A DNA stretch of 64,000 bases from Chara braunii (lineage: Eukaryota > Plantae > Charophyceae): contig BFEA01000013.1 in NCBI GenBank assembly GCA_003427395.1, forward strand, positions 1,634,755 to 1,698,754, given 5' to 3'. Both the position numbers and the translations under genes were made by a program. A model generated the notes under the pieces. The model saw only the letters and a program-made list of their open reading frames with translations, did not search any database and was not told the DNA's origin. Below, piece by piece: positions 22,616-24,037 of the stretch; position 1 is the first letter of the stretch; the number at the start of each line of letters is the position of its first letter.

Positions 22616-24037
22616 ATGGATCAGCGGTCTGCTTCTTTGTCTACCCCAATTTTCTCTGTGCCTCCTCCACAGGTTGTTGCGGTTCCGTTGTCTCAAACGG
22701 ATACATCCGCTCCTATGCCTCCTGGAGACAGTCCAGCTGCTTGCACACAGCCACAGCATCAGGTTTTATGCCCTTCCATGTTCGTTTGTCCCCCAGTTGT
22801 ACAACATGCGGCCCCGAACGCTGAGGGCCTGGAACATGATCAGCTCGGACTGCATTTAACCCCGCAAGGCATAGACCATAGGGGGGATTTTCAAATGGCT
22901 GACGAGGATCATATGAATGAACCGCATACTTGTGCCCCACCCTGTGTGGCCCCGAATGCTGAGGGACTGGAACATGATCTGCTTGGACTGCATTTAATCC
23001 CACATGGCGCAGACCCCACGAGGGATTTGCAAATGGCTGACCAGGATCATATGGATGAACCGCATACTTGTGCACCACCCTGCGCAGACCCCACGAGTGA
23101 TCTACAAATGACTGACCAACCAAACCAGCCTGAGATCCCCGCCAATCTCTGTGGTCTGACTGCAACTAATAGTTGCCTTCACATTTTCAATCGGTCGTTG
23201 TATACACCATCAAATTTCCTTTCAATTGCCCTACAACTTGATGTTGATCTCGCTAATCTCGCTGATCCCCCCGACCTACAGCCAGAGCATAGTAATTACA
23301 CCAGGGAAGGAGGTTTTACCATTGCTGTCCTAGAAATAGCGATGAGGAACCGCCAGCTTGAACTATGCCATGCTCTACCAGGTGAATTGTTTAATCCTCC
23401 ATCCCACATCTCTACCTGCATTGTGCACGGGCCTGGCCATTACATGGCTATCGTACACGCCTCTGACCATTGGGAGGTGTGGAACGACGGTGTCATGGTC
23501 CATGCCATGATTGATATTACTGATTTCTTACTCTATGATGCTGTTCTCTTGCCACATCAAACTGTCCGCAATCTCCTTTATGTCGAAGATCATTCCTCTG
23601 CCACCGTAGTGCAGTAGTACAATGTATACACACTATGTGACCTTCTCCTTTGTACAGCCACAGACACTGTTGCACTTAAGTGTACTCGCCATCATCTTTG
23701 TCACAATCACTACCATGAGATGGTTTTTGCATCCATGTGTGTAGAGTATTGTCCCTTCGTTCCTGACTGCAGGCACCCTCCTCATTCGGACACTATATGT
23801 CCATTTTGTGGCCACGGACGCTATGCTGAATGCATGCTCTTTTGTGGGGGGCGTTCTTCCTTTATTCTGGCCTGCAATAGACATGCTATTTGTNAGGAAT
23901 GTATGGTTGGCATGCTTAATGCCAGCCGTCGTGGGAGTNGTTGTTTTGAGAATGCTCAGTTAGGTCTTCCATGTGCTCATCCACCCCATCCTTACAATGT
24001 GTGTCCTTTCTGTCATCAAGGACAGCCTCATTCTTGA
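22616..24037 (+). CDS. Josephin (ataxin-3-like) cysteine protease plus two RING-like zinc fingers; single in-frame TAG at 23615-23617
   Basis: NLCG (Cys 23150), LYTPSNFLSIALQLD, NYTREGGFTIAVLEIAM, GHY (His 23438) and WEVWND (Asn 23483) align with Josephin motifs. The frame stays open 23618-24037 with two C-C-C-H-C-(C/H)-CPFC units. Confidence 0.75.
22810..23118 (+). repeat. ~138-bp coding tandem repeat (about 2.3 units) N-terminal to the Josephin domain
   Basis: APNAEGLEHD.LGLHL.P.G.D...D.QMAD.DHM.EPHTCAPPC repeated in the translation. Confidence 0.9.

Follow-up and report, generated by a model that had tools for sequence, protein, structure and literature searches.

The DNA considered here is a stretch of 64,000 nucleotides (nt) of the Chara braunii genome (contig BFEA01000013.1, assembly GCA_003427395.1), hereafter referred to as the window, the first letter of which is position 1 in all coordinates given below. 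Within the window, an open reading frame (ORF) of 358 codons (22541–23617, plus strand) is followed, in the same frame, by an ORF of 105 codons (23720–24037), as seen in the ORF table, the frame translation and the DNA alike. In order, this frame contains a Josephin-like domain and two Cys/His-rich fingers, all of which belong to a copy of a Chlamys-type Penelope-like retroelement that is truncated at its 5′ end and has an internal deletion (22325–24410, plus strand). Very probably, a high-copy Penelope-like retrotransposon of C. braunii, of the type known as Chlamys-1_cBra, once inserted here, and the stretch is what is left of the 3′ part of that now dead insertion.

Results

Examination of the 358-codon ORF, for which an earlier sequence-only reading of this DNA had chosen the ATG at 22616 as the start, showed it to be what is left of the C-terminal extension of the polyprotein encoded by the element. 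Upstream, the frame translation contains in-frame stops at about 22472 and 22526. Downstream, a TAG codon (23615–23617) is the single separator of the 358- and 105-residue ORFs, with the 34 codons that follow it being open, as that reading had described, and already including the first four ligands of finger 1. Likewise, all five of the Josephin-like blocks that it had listed, namely, NLCG, LYTPSNFLSIALQLD, NYTREGGFTIAVL, GHY and WEVWND, were located in the ORF, at residues 202, 220, 252, 299 and 312, respectively. The proposed His-to-Asn distance of 15 residues, as in ataxin-3 (H119/N134), was found between His300 and Asn315. Finally, the Cys/His spacings of the two fingers were as described, corresponding to C-x4-C-x9-C-x2-H-x2-C-x2-H ... 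CPFC in finger 1 and to C-x3-C-x9-C-x2-H-x2-C-x2-C ... CPFC in finger 2, with each finger also containing a C...C-x-HPPH insert.

The Josephin-like domain (23144–23575, plus strand) is likely to be a divergent Josephin-like papain-fold cysteine protease, with Cys204 or Cys212 as the candidate catalytic cysteine and with His300 and Asn315 as the other candidate catalytic residues. When compared with Pfam, the window sequence matched the Josephin family PF02099 with 22.9 bits (E 8.1e-5), a score under the gathering cut-off of 26, while three relatives scored 25.2, 25.1 and 21.6 bits (E 1.6e-5, 1.7e-5 and 2.1e-4), again all under that cut-off. In these four family members, PF02099 was the sole Pfam match. 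When a profile of the family was compared with the Protein Data Bank (PDB), the top match was the ataxin-3-like structure 3o65 (E 0.32). In this alignment, His300 falls on His119, while the Trp found four residues before Asn315 falls on Trp130, thus placing Asn315 on Asn134. Among the five copies covering the site, the His does not vary and the last triad residue is either Asn or Asp, with both Cys204 and Cys212 being conserved in both subfamilies of the element. The box around the His (GHY..AIV...W....D) is also similar to USP12, as revealed by a PDB profile alignment, and phmmer searches of the PDB with the window domain and with P0003, a divergent protein of the family, gave no Josephin match.

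In the Atlas language-model feature search, the domain reached 0.94, with Josephin clusters comprising 27 of the 30 matches. In the same search, the nearest named clusters, for the Josephin-like domain and the finger module alike, came from giant viruses (Nucleocytoviricota), which offers no more than a lead on the origin of the module. Structure searches were performed with AlphaFold2 models for which the alignments were too shallow (8 rows for the Josephin-like domain and 7 rows for the fingers). Against the PDB, Foldseek placed 2dos, 1yzb and 3o65 in the lead (E about 0.35, TM-score about 0.3), while VIA-align, covering 48,161 chains, ranked JOSD2 first (Z 5.4) and the ataxin-3-like structure second (Z 4.1). 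Neither ranking is significant alone, such that the poor models give rank-order hints only, and at E 0.001 Foldseek returned nothing from the PDB for either the Josephin-like domain or the finger models.

Finger 1 (23636–23809, plus strand), a RING-like module with 13 conserved Cys/His residues that include a C-x10-C-x-H-x2-H insert, is followed by finger 2 (23831–24013, plus strand), which duplicates finger 1, presents its ligands in a C3HC4-type order and contains the same insert. Two bases of finger 2, at 23894 and 23939, are given as n; the 95%-identical copy L001 encodes Gln and Cys at these positions. The two fingers, which share 34% identity (E 6e-13), arose by internal duplication. Each finger presents 12–13 conserved ligands, with the 13 of finger 1 being invariant, and in the divergent subfamily the Cys/His columns are 88% conserved, as compared to 38% for the other columns. 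With the exception of the first pair, the eight ligands of both fingers fit the RING order C-x2-C-x(9-39)-C-x(1-3)-H-x(2-3)-C/H-x2-C-x(4-48)-C-x2-C, a fit that is weak evidence when taken alone. The members of the first pair are separated by four and three residues in the window and by the canonical two (CDTC) in the divergent P0003 and L004b, while ligand 6 of finger 1 is a His. The additional C-x(9-10)-C-x-H-x2-H insert sits between ligands 6 and 7 and could provide a third zinc site.

All of the weak Pfam matches obtained with the fingers were to families of the RING clan (CL0229). The best of these was zf-RING_5 in L004b (E 3.8e-4; 20.8 bits, as compared to a gathering cut-off of 27.9), with zf-P11, zf-RING_2 and RING_XB3 following at E 0.03–1.3, under their gathering scores. 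The Atlas feature matches were to RING clusters and reached 0.82–0.88, with 0.9 being the level counted as more than a lead. In the AlphaFold2 model, each finger presents the order strand-strand-helix, and the best row of a Foldseek search with this poor model was the RNF4 RING (E 7.3). A PDB profile search with the fingers gave no match. On balance, the fingers are rather more probably RING-like than not, with E3 ligase activity being possible, if doubtful.

Because of the Pfam Josephin match (E 8.1e-5), the similarity of one finger to the other (E 6e-13) and the recurrence of the unit in other copies, the observation goes beyond chance, and the possibility that these are chance ORFs was rejected.

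The window copy was compared with copies L001, L002 and L003, with a pair of copies from the Chara locus L004 and with proteins P0001–P0005. The nearest protein, with 87% identity, is C. braunii hypothetical protein CBR_g37361 (P0001; assembly GCA_003427395.1), and the locus encoding this protein, L001, shares 95% DNA identity with positions 22855–24043. At the DNA level, L002, a 1.2-kb metagenome contig, is 85% identical. More distant copies, at 40–48% amino-acid identity, correspond to P0003/L003 and the two copies in L004. It was also seen that a single metagenome assembly in the ENA, ERZ27272674, contains both L002 (85%) and L003 (about 45% identity), and that DNA of a Chara-like alga is, therefore, present in that sample. 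Word-indexed protein searches returned only one family member each, while an exhaustive search of representative proteins gave six matches only, all of which were family members or chimeric gene models; no sequence-level relatives from outside the family were found in this exhaustive search. Two Chara gene models, P0004 (1706 residues, Maestro-type HEAT-repeat) and P0005 (2058 residues, separase-like TPR), have C-termini that consist of 52–56 residues of this Josephin-like domain at 90–95% identity. These are probably chimeric annotations or exonised transposon fragments.

The TAG codon is a private feature of the window copy, with CAG (Gln) being found elsewhere in the family. In both L001 and L002, the codon at this site is CAG. 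Moreover, when public DNA and RNA runs were mapped onto positions 22330–23893, a range that leaves finger 2 outside read coverage, position 23615 was a C in all covering DNA contigs and RNA reads (12 of 12 in X22 and 51 of 51 in X23). The question raised in the sequence-only reading, namely, whether TAG is a sense codon in paralogues, is thus answered in the affirmative, and the stop is not conserved across paralogues. Since the codon is CAG in L001 and L002 and the base is a C in all reads, the Josephin-like domain and the two fingers comprise one frame at the level of the family. In P0002 and L001, a single frame runs from the Josephin C-terminus through both fingers, in P0003 a full Josephin-like domain is joined to finger 1 in one ORF, and L004:12906–13973 contains the Josephin-like domain and both fingers with no stop. 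Other copies are broken at sites of their own: L001 has acquired a frameshift, L002 a different stop and L003 a stop downstream of finger 1. The ancestral form is thus a fusion of the Josephin-like domain and the fingers, with the TAG being either a C-to-T change confined to the window copy or an error of assembly. Programmed read-through of the TAG was rejected, given the absence of this codon from L001, L002 and all reads.

The element copy in the window (95% identical to L001 and 85% identical to L002) is about 2.1 kb long and comprises the linker, the Josephin-like domain, the two fingers and the 3′ untranslated region only. It is directly preceded by (TA)n at 22315–22324. The linker before the Josephin-like domain contains about 2.3 copies of a 138-nt (46-codon) tandem repeat (22807–23118, plus strand; repeat families D3 and D6), while conservation of the 3′ untranslated tail (24038–24410, plus strand) extends to L001, L002 and three sites within L004. 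In L001, the 3′ end of the family reads ...GTGACAATAT(AT)n and is followed by unrelated DNA; the window copy ends at 24410, 6 nt before this family end. Summed DNA word depth across the element, determined from public read data, ranged from 1e4 to about 3e5, meaning that the family is of very high copy number. The loose ends of reads showed (TA)n or the tails of other elements before many internal positions, and many copies are, therefore, 5′-truncated; truncated copies are present in L001 and L004. As such loose ends also occur on both sides of 22806, the window copy carries an internal deletion at 22806/22807 relative to most copies. Lacking an endonuclease and a reverse transcriptase, and bearing both an internal deletion and a stop codon, the window locus is a dead fragment, that is, ordinary transposon debris that encodes no functional protein.

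Reverse transcriptase context was provided by L004, where the motifs VDK(T) without G, YYALKAHK, DFTTMYTNLPHD, QLIGIPMW, RLIDD and FLG lie on the same strand, 0.9–2.2 kb upstream of the Josephin-like domain. These were identified by eye, from knowledge of the motifs of Penelope-like element (PLE) reverse transcriptases. A tblastx comparison of the window linker (22315–23140) with the L004 linker yielded low-complexity noise only. The high copy number, the 5′-truncated copies and the reverse-transcriptase-like motifs upstream in L004 bear out the proposal of the sequence-only reading that the module is borne by a mobile element.

Selection on the Josephin-finger frame was addressed by calculating the ratio of nonsynonymous to synonymous substitution rates (dN/dS) according to Nei-Gojobori, with p values from the Fisher test. 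For the window copy and L002, dN/dS was 0.37 (0.43 for the Josephin part and 0.31 for the fingers; p 5.5e-7), while for L003 and L004b, a value of 0.21 was obtained (p 1.8e-16). Both values are below 1, the outcome for which the sequence-only reading had proposed to check, and the frame has evolved under purifying selection at the level of the family. Such a pattern is expected for a module that is needed by active element lineages and that decays after insertion. Transcription was considered using oligo-dT RNA-seq reads, which showed a strand bias of about 10:1 over the stretch. Assuming the usual stranded layout, in which the first mate is opposite to the RNA, this implies RNA of the sense strand. 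Most of the RNA reads are only 95–99% identical to the window copy and, hence, come from paralogues. The family is thus transcribed, with the RNA evidence concerning the family rather than the window locus.

Examination of the neighboring DNA revealed that the same (TA)n tract had also received a complete Ty3/gypsy long terminal repeat (LTR) retrotransposon (13235–22314, plus strand; LTRs at 13235–14406 and 21119–22314). This element encodes gag, protease, reverse transcriptase, RNase H and integrase (Pfam domains RVP_2, RVT_1, RT_RNaseH_2, Integrase_H2C2 and rve), contains a tRNA-primer-like site after the 5′ LTR and presents assembly gaps in both LTRs. The integrase ORF upstream of the Josephin-bearing copy is explained by its being part of this element. 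On the other side, an inverted copy of a separate, hammerhead-bearing repeat family (24411–24688, minus strand; inverted repeat pairs I1 and I3) abuts the 3′ end of the Josephin-bearing element and contains a match to Hammerhead_3 (24448–24503, minus strand; E 3.7e-7, under the gathering score). Type III hammerhead matches were found at 12978–13033 (plus strand), 24448–24503 (minus strand) and 25009–25064 (plus strand), with E values of 1e-8 to 6e-6, under the gathering score. The hammerhead-bearing repeats of the window lie at 12798–13200, 24411–24787 and 24927–25072, with the family ending in ...TTTGACGATAT(AT)n; the tail of the Josephin-bearing element with which this end was compared was read in L001 at 11500–11520. 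The two families share a similar tail, GAC(G/A)ATAT(AT)n.

Elsewhere in the window, a Helitron was detected at 57619–60222 (minus strand), where one ORF (58885–60222) matches Helitron_like_N (E 2.8e-52) and the adjacent ORF (57619–58872) ends in the start of a PIF1-like helicase. A full-length match to U6 small nuclear RNA is found at 63474–63577 (plus strand; 47.3 bits, over the Rfam gathering score of 44). A group II intron match (RF00029) is found, in nuclear DNA, at 36297–36373 (minus strand; 44 bits, over the gathering score of 40) and is possibly an organelle-derived insertion.

Discussion

Three types of Chlamys PLE have been described in C. braunii (Craig et al., 2021; Mol Biol Evol, PMC8557442). 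One of these, Chlamys-1_cBra, encodes an ORF of roughly 1,800 residues with a C-terminal extension that is weakly Josephin-like and that contains an "unknown" Cys/His motif. More generally, Chlamys elements encode a reverse transcriptase with DK instead of DKG, contain internal tandem repeats, target microsatellites, insert in tandem or inverted orientation and reach very high copy numbers in C. braunii (PMC8557442). Since the description of Chlamys-1_cBra matches the window family, the architecture has already been published, and the domain order that the sequence-only reading did not recognise is that of the published C-terminal extension (PMC8557442). The two agree in host species, in a weak C-terminal Josephin match followed by a conserved Cys/His motif, in very high copy number, in 5′ truncation, in tandem or inverted insertions, in internal tandem repeats and in the use of a microsatellite as target. 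They differ in that the window copy comprises only the last ~2.1 kb, without the region for the reverse transcriptase, CxC and GIY-YIG, and in that the Cys/His motif, left unnamed in PMC8557442, is seen here to correspond to two duplicated RING-like modules. Likewise, the target is (TA)n in the window, whereas many Chlamys elements use (CA)n and (C)n (PMC8557442). Among the other PLE papers examined, the word "Josephin" does not appear in the main text.

In the intact members of this family, one long polyprotein would contain reverse transcriptase, the repeat-containing linker, the Josephin-like protease and the two duplicated RING-like zinc modules. The front of the window copy would have been lost by 5′ truncation, typical of target-primed reverse transcription, with the internal deletion at 22806/22807 and the C-to-T change that turned CAG into a frame-splitting TAG presumably adding to its decay. 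As for function, the Josephin-like domain may remove or clip ubiquitin on the protein of the element or on host targets, or may cleave the polyprotein, while the RING-like modules may bring in an E2 enzyme or interact with a partner. In combination, the protease and the fingers could allow the element to escape host degradation or restriction.

A number of points weigh against these assignments. The window element was matched to Chlamys-1_cBra by description rather than by consensus alignment. Pfam gave no match to the reverse-transcriptase-like ORFs of L004, and no full-length copy with an N-terminal GIY-YIG endonuclease was found among the copies examined, with L004 containing an assembly gap at 1–7418. 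The profile comparisons proposed in the sequence-only reading did bring up Josephin and RING-clan families, but all scores, both Josephin and RING, are under the curated Pfam cut-offs. Similarly, Josephin structures ranked first when AlphaFold2 models were used, but the models are poor, with a mean predicted local distance difference test (pLDDT) score of 49 for the Josephin-like domain (<50 at residues 1–31) and 40 for the fingers. The catalytic Cys is ambiguous, as the alignment to 3o65 begins after Cys14 and puts Cys212 on the non-catalytic Cys18, with Cys204 matching Cys14 only if an insertion of four residues is allowed. Finally, "ubiquitin editing" by a deubiquitinase plus an E3 ligase, the function put forward in the sequence-only reading, would be a prediction from domain content.

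Comparison with better-known systems offers some perspective. The Josephin deubiquitinases ataxin-3, ataxin-3-like and JOSD1/2 (PF02099; 1yzb, 3o65 and 6pgv) resemble the domain considered here in terms of its length of about 150–170 residues, the 15-residue separation of His and Asn/Asp and the FLSIA.QLD and GGF..N/AVL blocks, and they are also the top-ranked structures and feature clusters. Unlike these enzymes, the Chara domain is embedded in a transposon polyprotein, lacks ubiquitin-interacting motifs, includes four extra residues between the first conserved Cys and the next helix motif, and shares only about 20% identity with them, with a score under the cut-off.

Rbx1 and APC11 are RING fingers that contain an extra zinc site. 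They share with the Chara modules the cross-brace ligand order C-C-C-H-C-C/H...C-C and an insert that might accommodate a third zinc. The Chara insert, however, lies between ligands 6 and 7 of a module found in tandem, and no significant profile or structure match was obtained. A20 combines a deubiquitinase (OTU) and a ligase (zinc finger 4) in one ubiquitin-editing enzyme. The Chara polyprotein would be alike in joining a cysteine-protease deubiquitinase to a zinc-finger ligase in one polypeptide, a purely conceptual likeness, with A20 relying on OTU and A20-type fingers rather than on Josephin-like and RING-like modules.

The occurrence of Josephin-like proteases in Dualen elements, mentioned in the sequence-only reading, is stated in PMC8557442, citing Kojima and Fujiwara (2005). 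As described there, the Dualen/RandI elements of green algae similarly encode a retrotransposon polyprotein of the green lineage with an accessory Josephin-like protease. In a comparison by description, they differ in belonging to the non-LTR class and in having two endonucleases, with RING-like modules not being reported in that account.

Against this background, it can be tentatively proposed, as a possibility well short of likely, that intact members encode a working ubiquitin pair, namely, a divergent Josephin deubiquitinase or clippase and tandem three-zinc RING E3 modules. Were this so, the "unknown" motif of Chlamys-1_cBra would be the first RING-type ligase described in a retrotransposon and would serve to rewire host ubiquitination during retrotransposition, with the window copy even then being no more than dead evidence of such a pair. 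Alternatively, the family module may be real and its assignment to ubiquitin wrong. The protease would then be a self-processing enzyme, a papain-fold protease other than a deubiquitinase or a dead one, and the fingers would be zinc modules that bind nucleic acid or protein, for instance in the recognition of RNA or target DNA, rather than E3 RINGs. The sub-threshold Josephin and RING profile scores, the resemblance of the His box to USP12, the ambiguous placement of the catalytic Cys and the poor structure models are in line with such a possibility. So are the spacing of 2–4 residues in the first ligand pair of the fingers and the presence of 4–5 ligands beyond the eight of a RING. In addition, the Cys/His motif was left without a name by Craig et al. 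(PMC8557442), and solved bacterial Josephin-like proteins are titled ubiquitin clippases, and not classical deubiquitinases, in their PDB entries. At the same time, four family members match Josephin and nothing else in Pfam (E 1.6e-5 to about 2e-4), 27 of 30 Atlas feature matches are to Josephin clusters, Josephin structures come first in two structure searches, and the His and Asn/Asp are conserved at the Josephin spacing. For the fingers, the weak Pfam and Atlas matches are all to RING families and the predicted strand-strand-helix order fits a RING core. A role for the module outside ubiquitin biology also seems unlikely, while deserving to be kept in mind.

The layout of the locus invites another explanation, in which the Josephin-finger cassette is cargo of the flanking hammerhead repeats, with the whole forming one composite, ribozyme-bounded element. 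Once the Ty3/gypsy element is removed, hammerhead-like motifs do lie on both sides of the cassette (12978–13033, plus strand, on one side, and 24448–24503, minus strand, and 25009–25064, plus strand, on the other), and the tails of the two families, GACGATAT(AT)n and GACAATAT(AT)n, resemble each other. However, the Josephin-bearing element in L001 has a tail of its own, followed by unrelated DNA and no ribozyme; in L004, the ribozyme repeat begins only after the element tail and a (TA)n stretch; and, in the window, the ribozyme copy on the downstream side has the opposite orientation. Moreover, Chlamys-2_cBra and the third Chara type carry hammerheads, whereas PLEs with an N-terminal endonuclease are mostly without canonical ones (PMC8557442). 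Independent insertions into one (TA)n hotspot account for the layout and explain the apparent bracketing by hammerheads. As such, a composite element is very improbable and was rejected on the basis of the L001 tail, the order in L004 and the inverted downstream copy. The resemblance of the tails may mean that a single reverse transcription machinery recognises the 3′ ends of both families, the ribozyme repeats then being the non-autonomous partners; just as well, it may come from nothing more than the (TA)n target that they have in common.

Lastly, it is hardly credible that the stretch belongs instead to the host, as one domesticated gene or as two genes, with a Josephin deubiquitinase and a RING protein, made separately or by read-through, serving in cellular ubiquitin editing. 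This explanation was rejected, since the long 358-codon frame, the sense transcription of the family, the dN/dS values below 1 and the P0004 and P0005 gene models ending in pieces of the domain must be set against DNA depth in the tens to hundreds of thousands, copies 5′-truncated at numerous positions and lying after (TA)n or the tails of other elements, stops or frameshifts that differ from copy to copy, a TAG found in none of the reads, reverse-transcriptase-like sequence upstream in L004, RNA reads that mostly are only 95–99% alike and hence come from other copies, and P0004/P0005 tails of just 52–56 residues that look like annotation chimeras.

With the stretch thus being best regarded as the remnant of a Chlamys-1_cBra-type element, the additions made here to the literature are small, comprising the reading of the Cys/His motif as a duplicated pair of RING-like modules that may hold an extra zinc site, along with the purifying selection and the sense transcription. 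By itself, the window locus is unimportant, being one decayed fragment among very many copies. For annotation of the genome, the family accounts for several unusual Chara gene models terminating in Josephin fragments. At the same time, a very successful algal retrotransposon keeps a tail consisting of a protease and zinc fingers under selection. If this tail does indeed combine a deubiquitinase and a ligase, then it would represent transposon-encoded manipulation of host ubiquitin, paralleling what is seen with many viruses.

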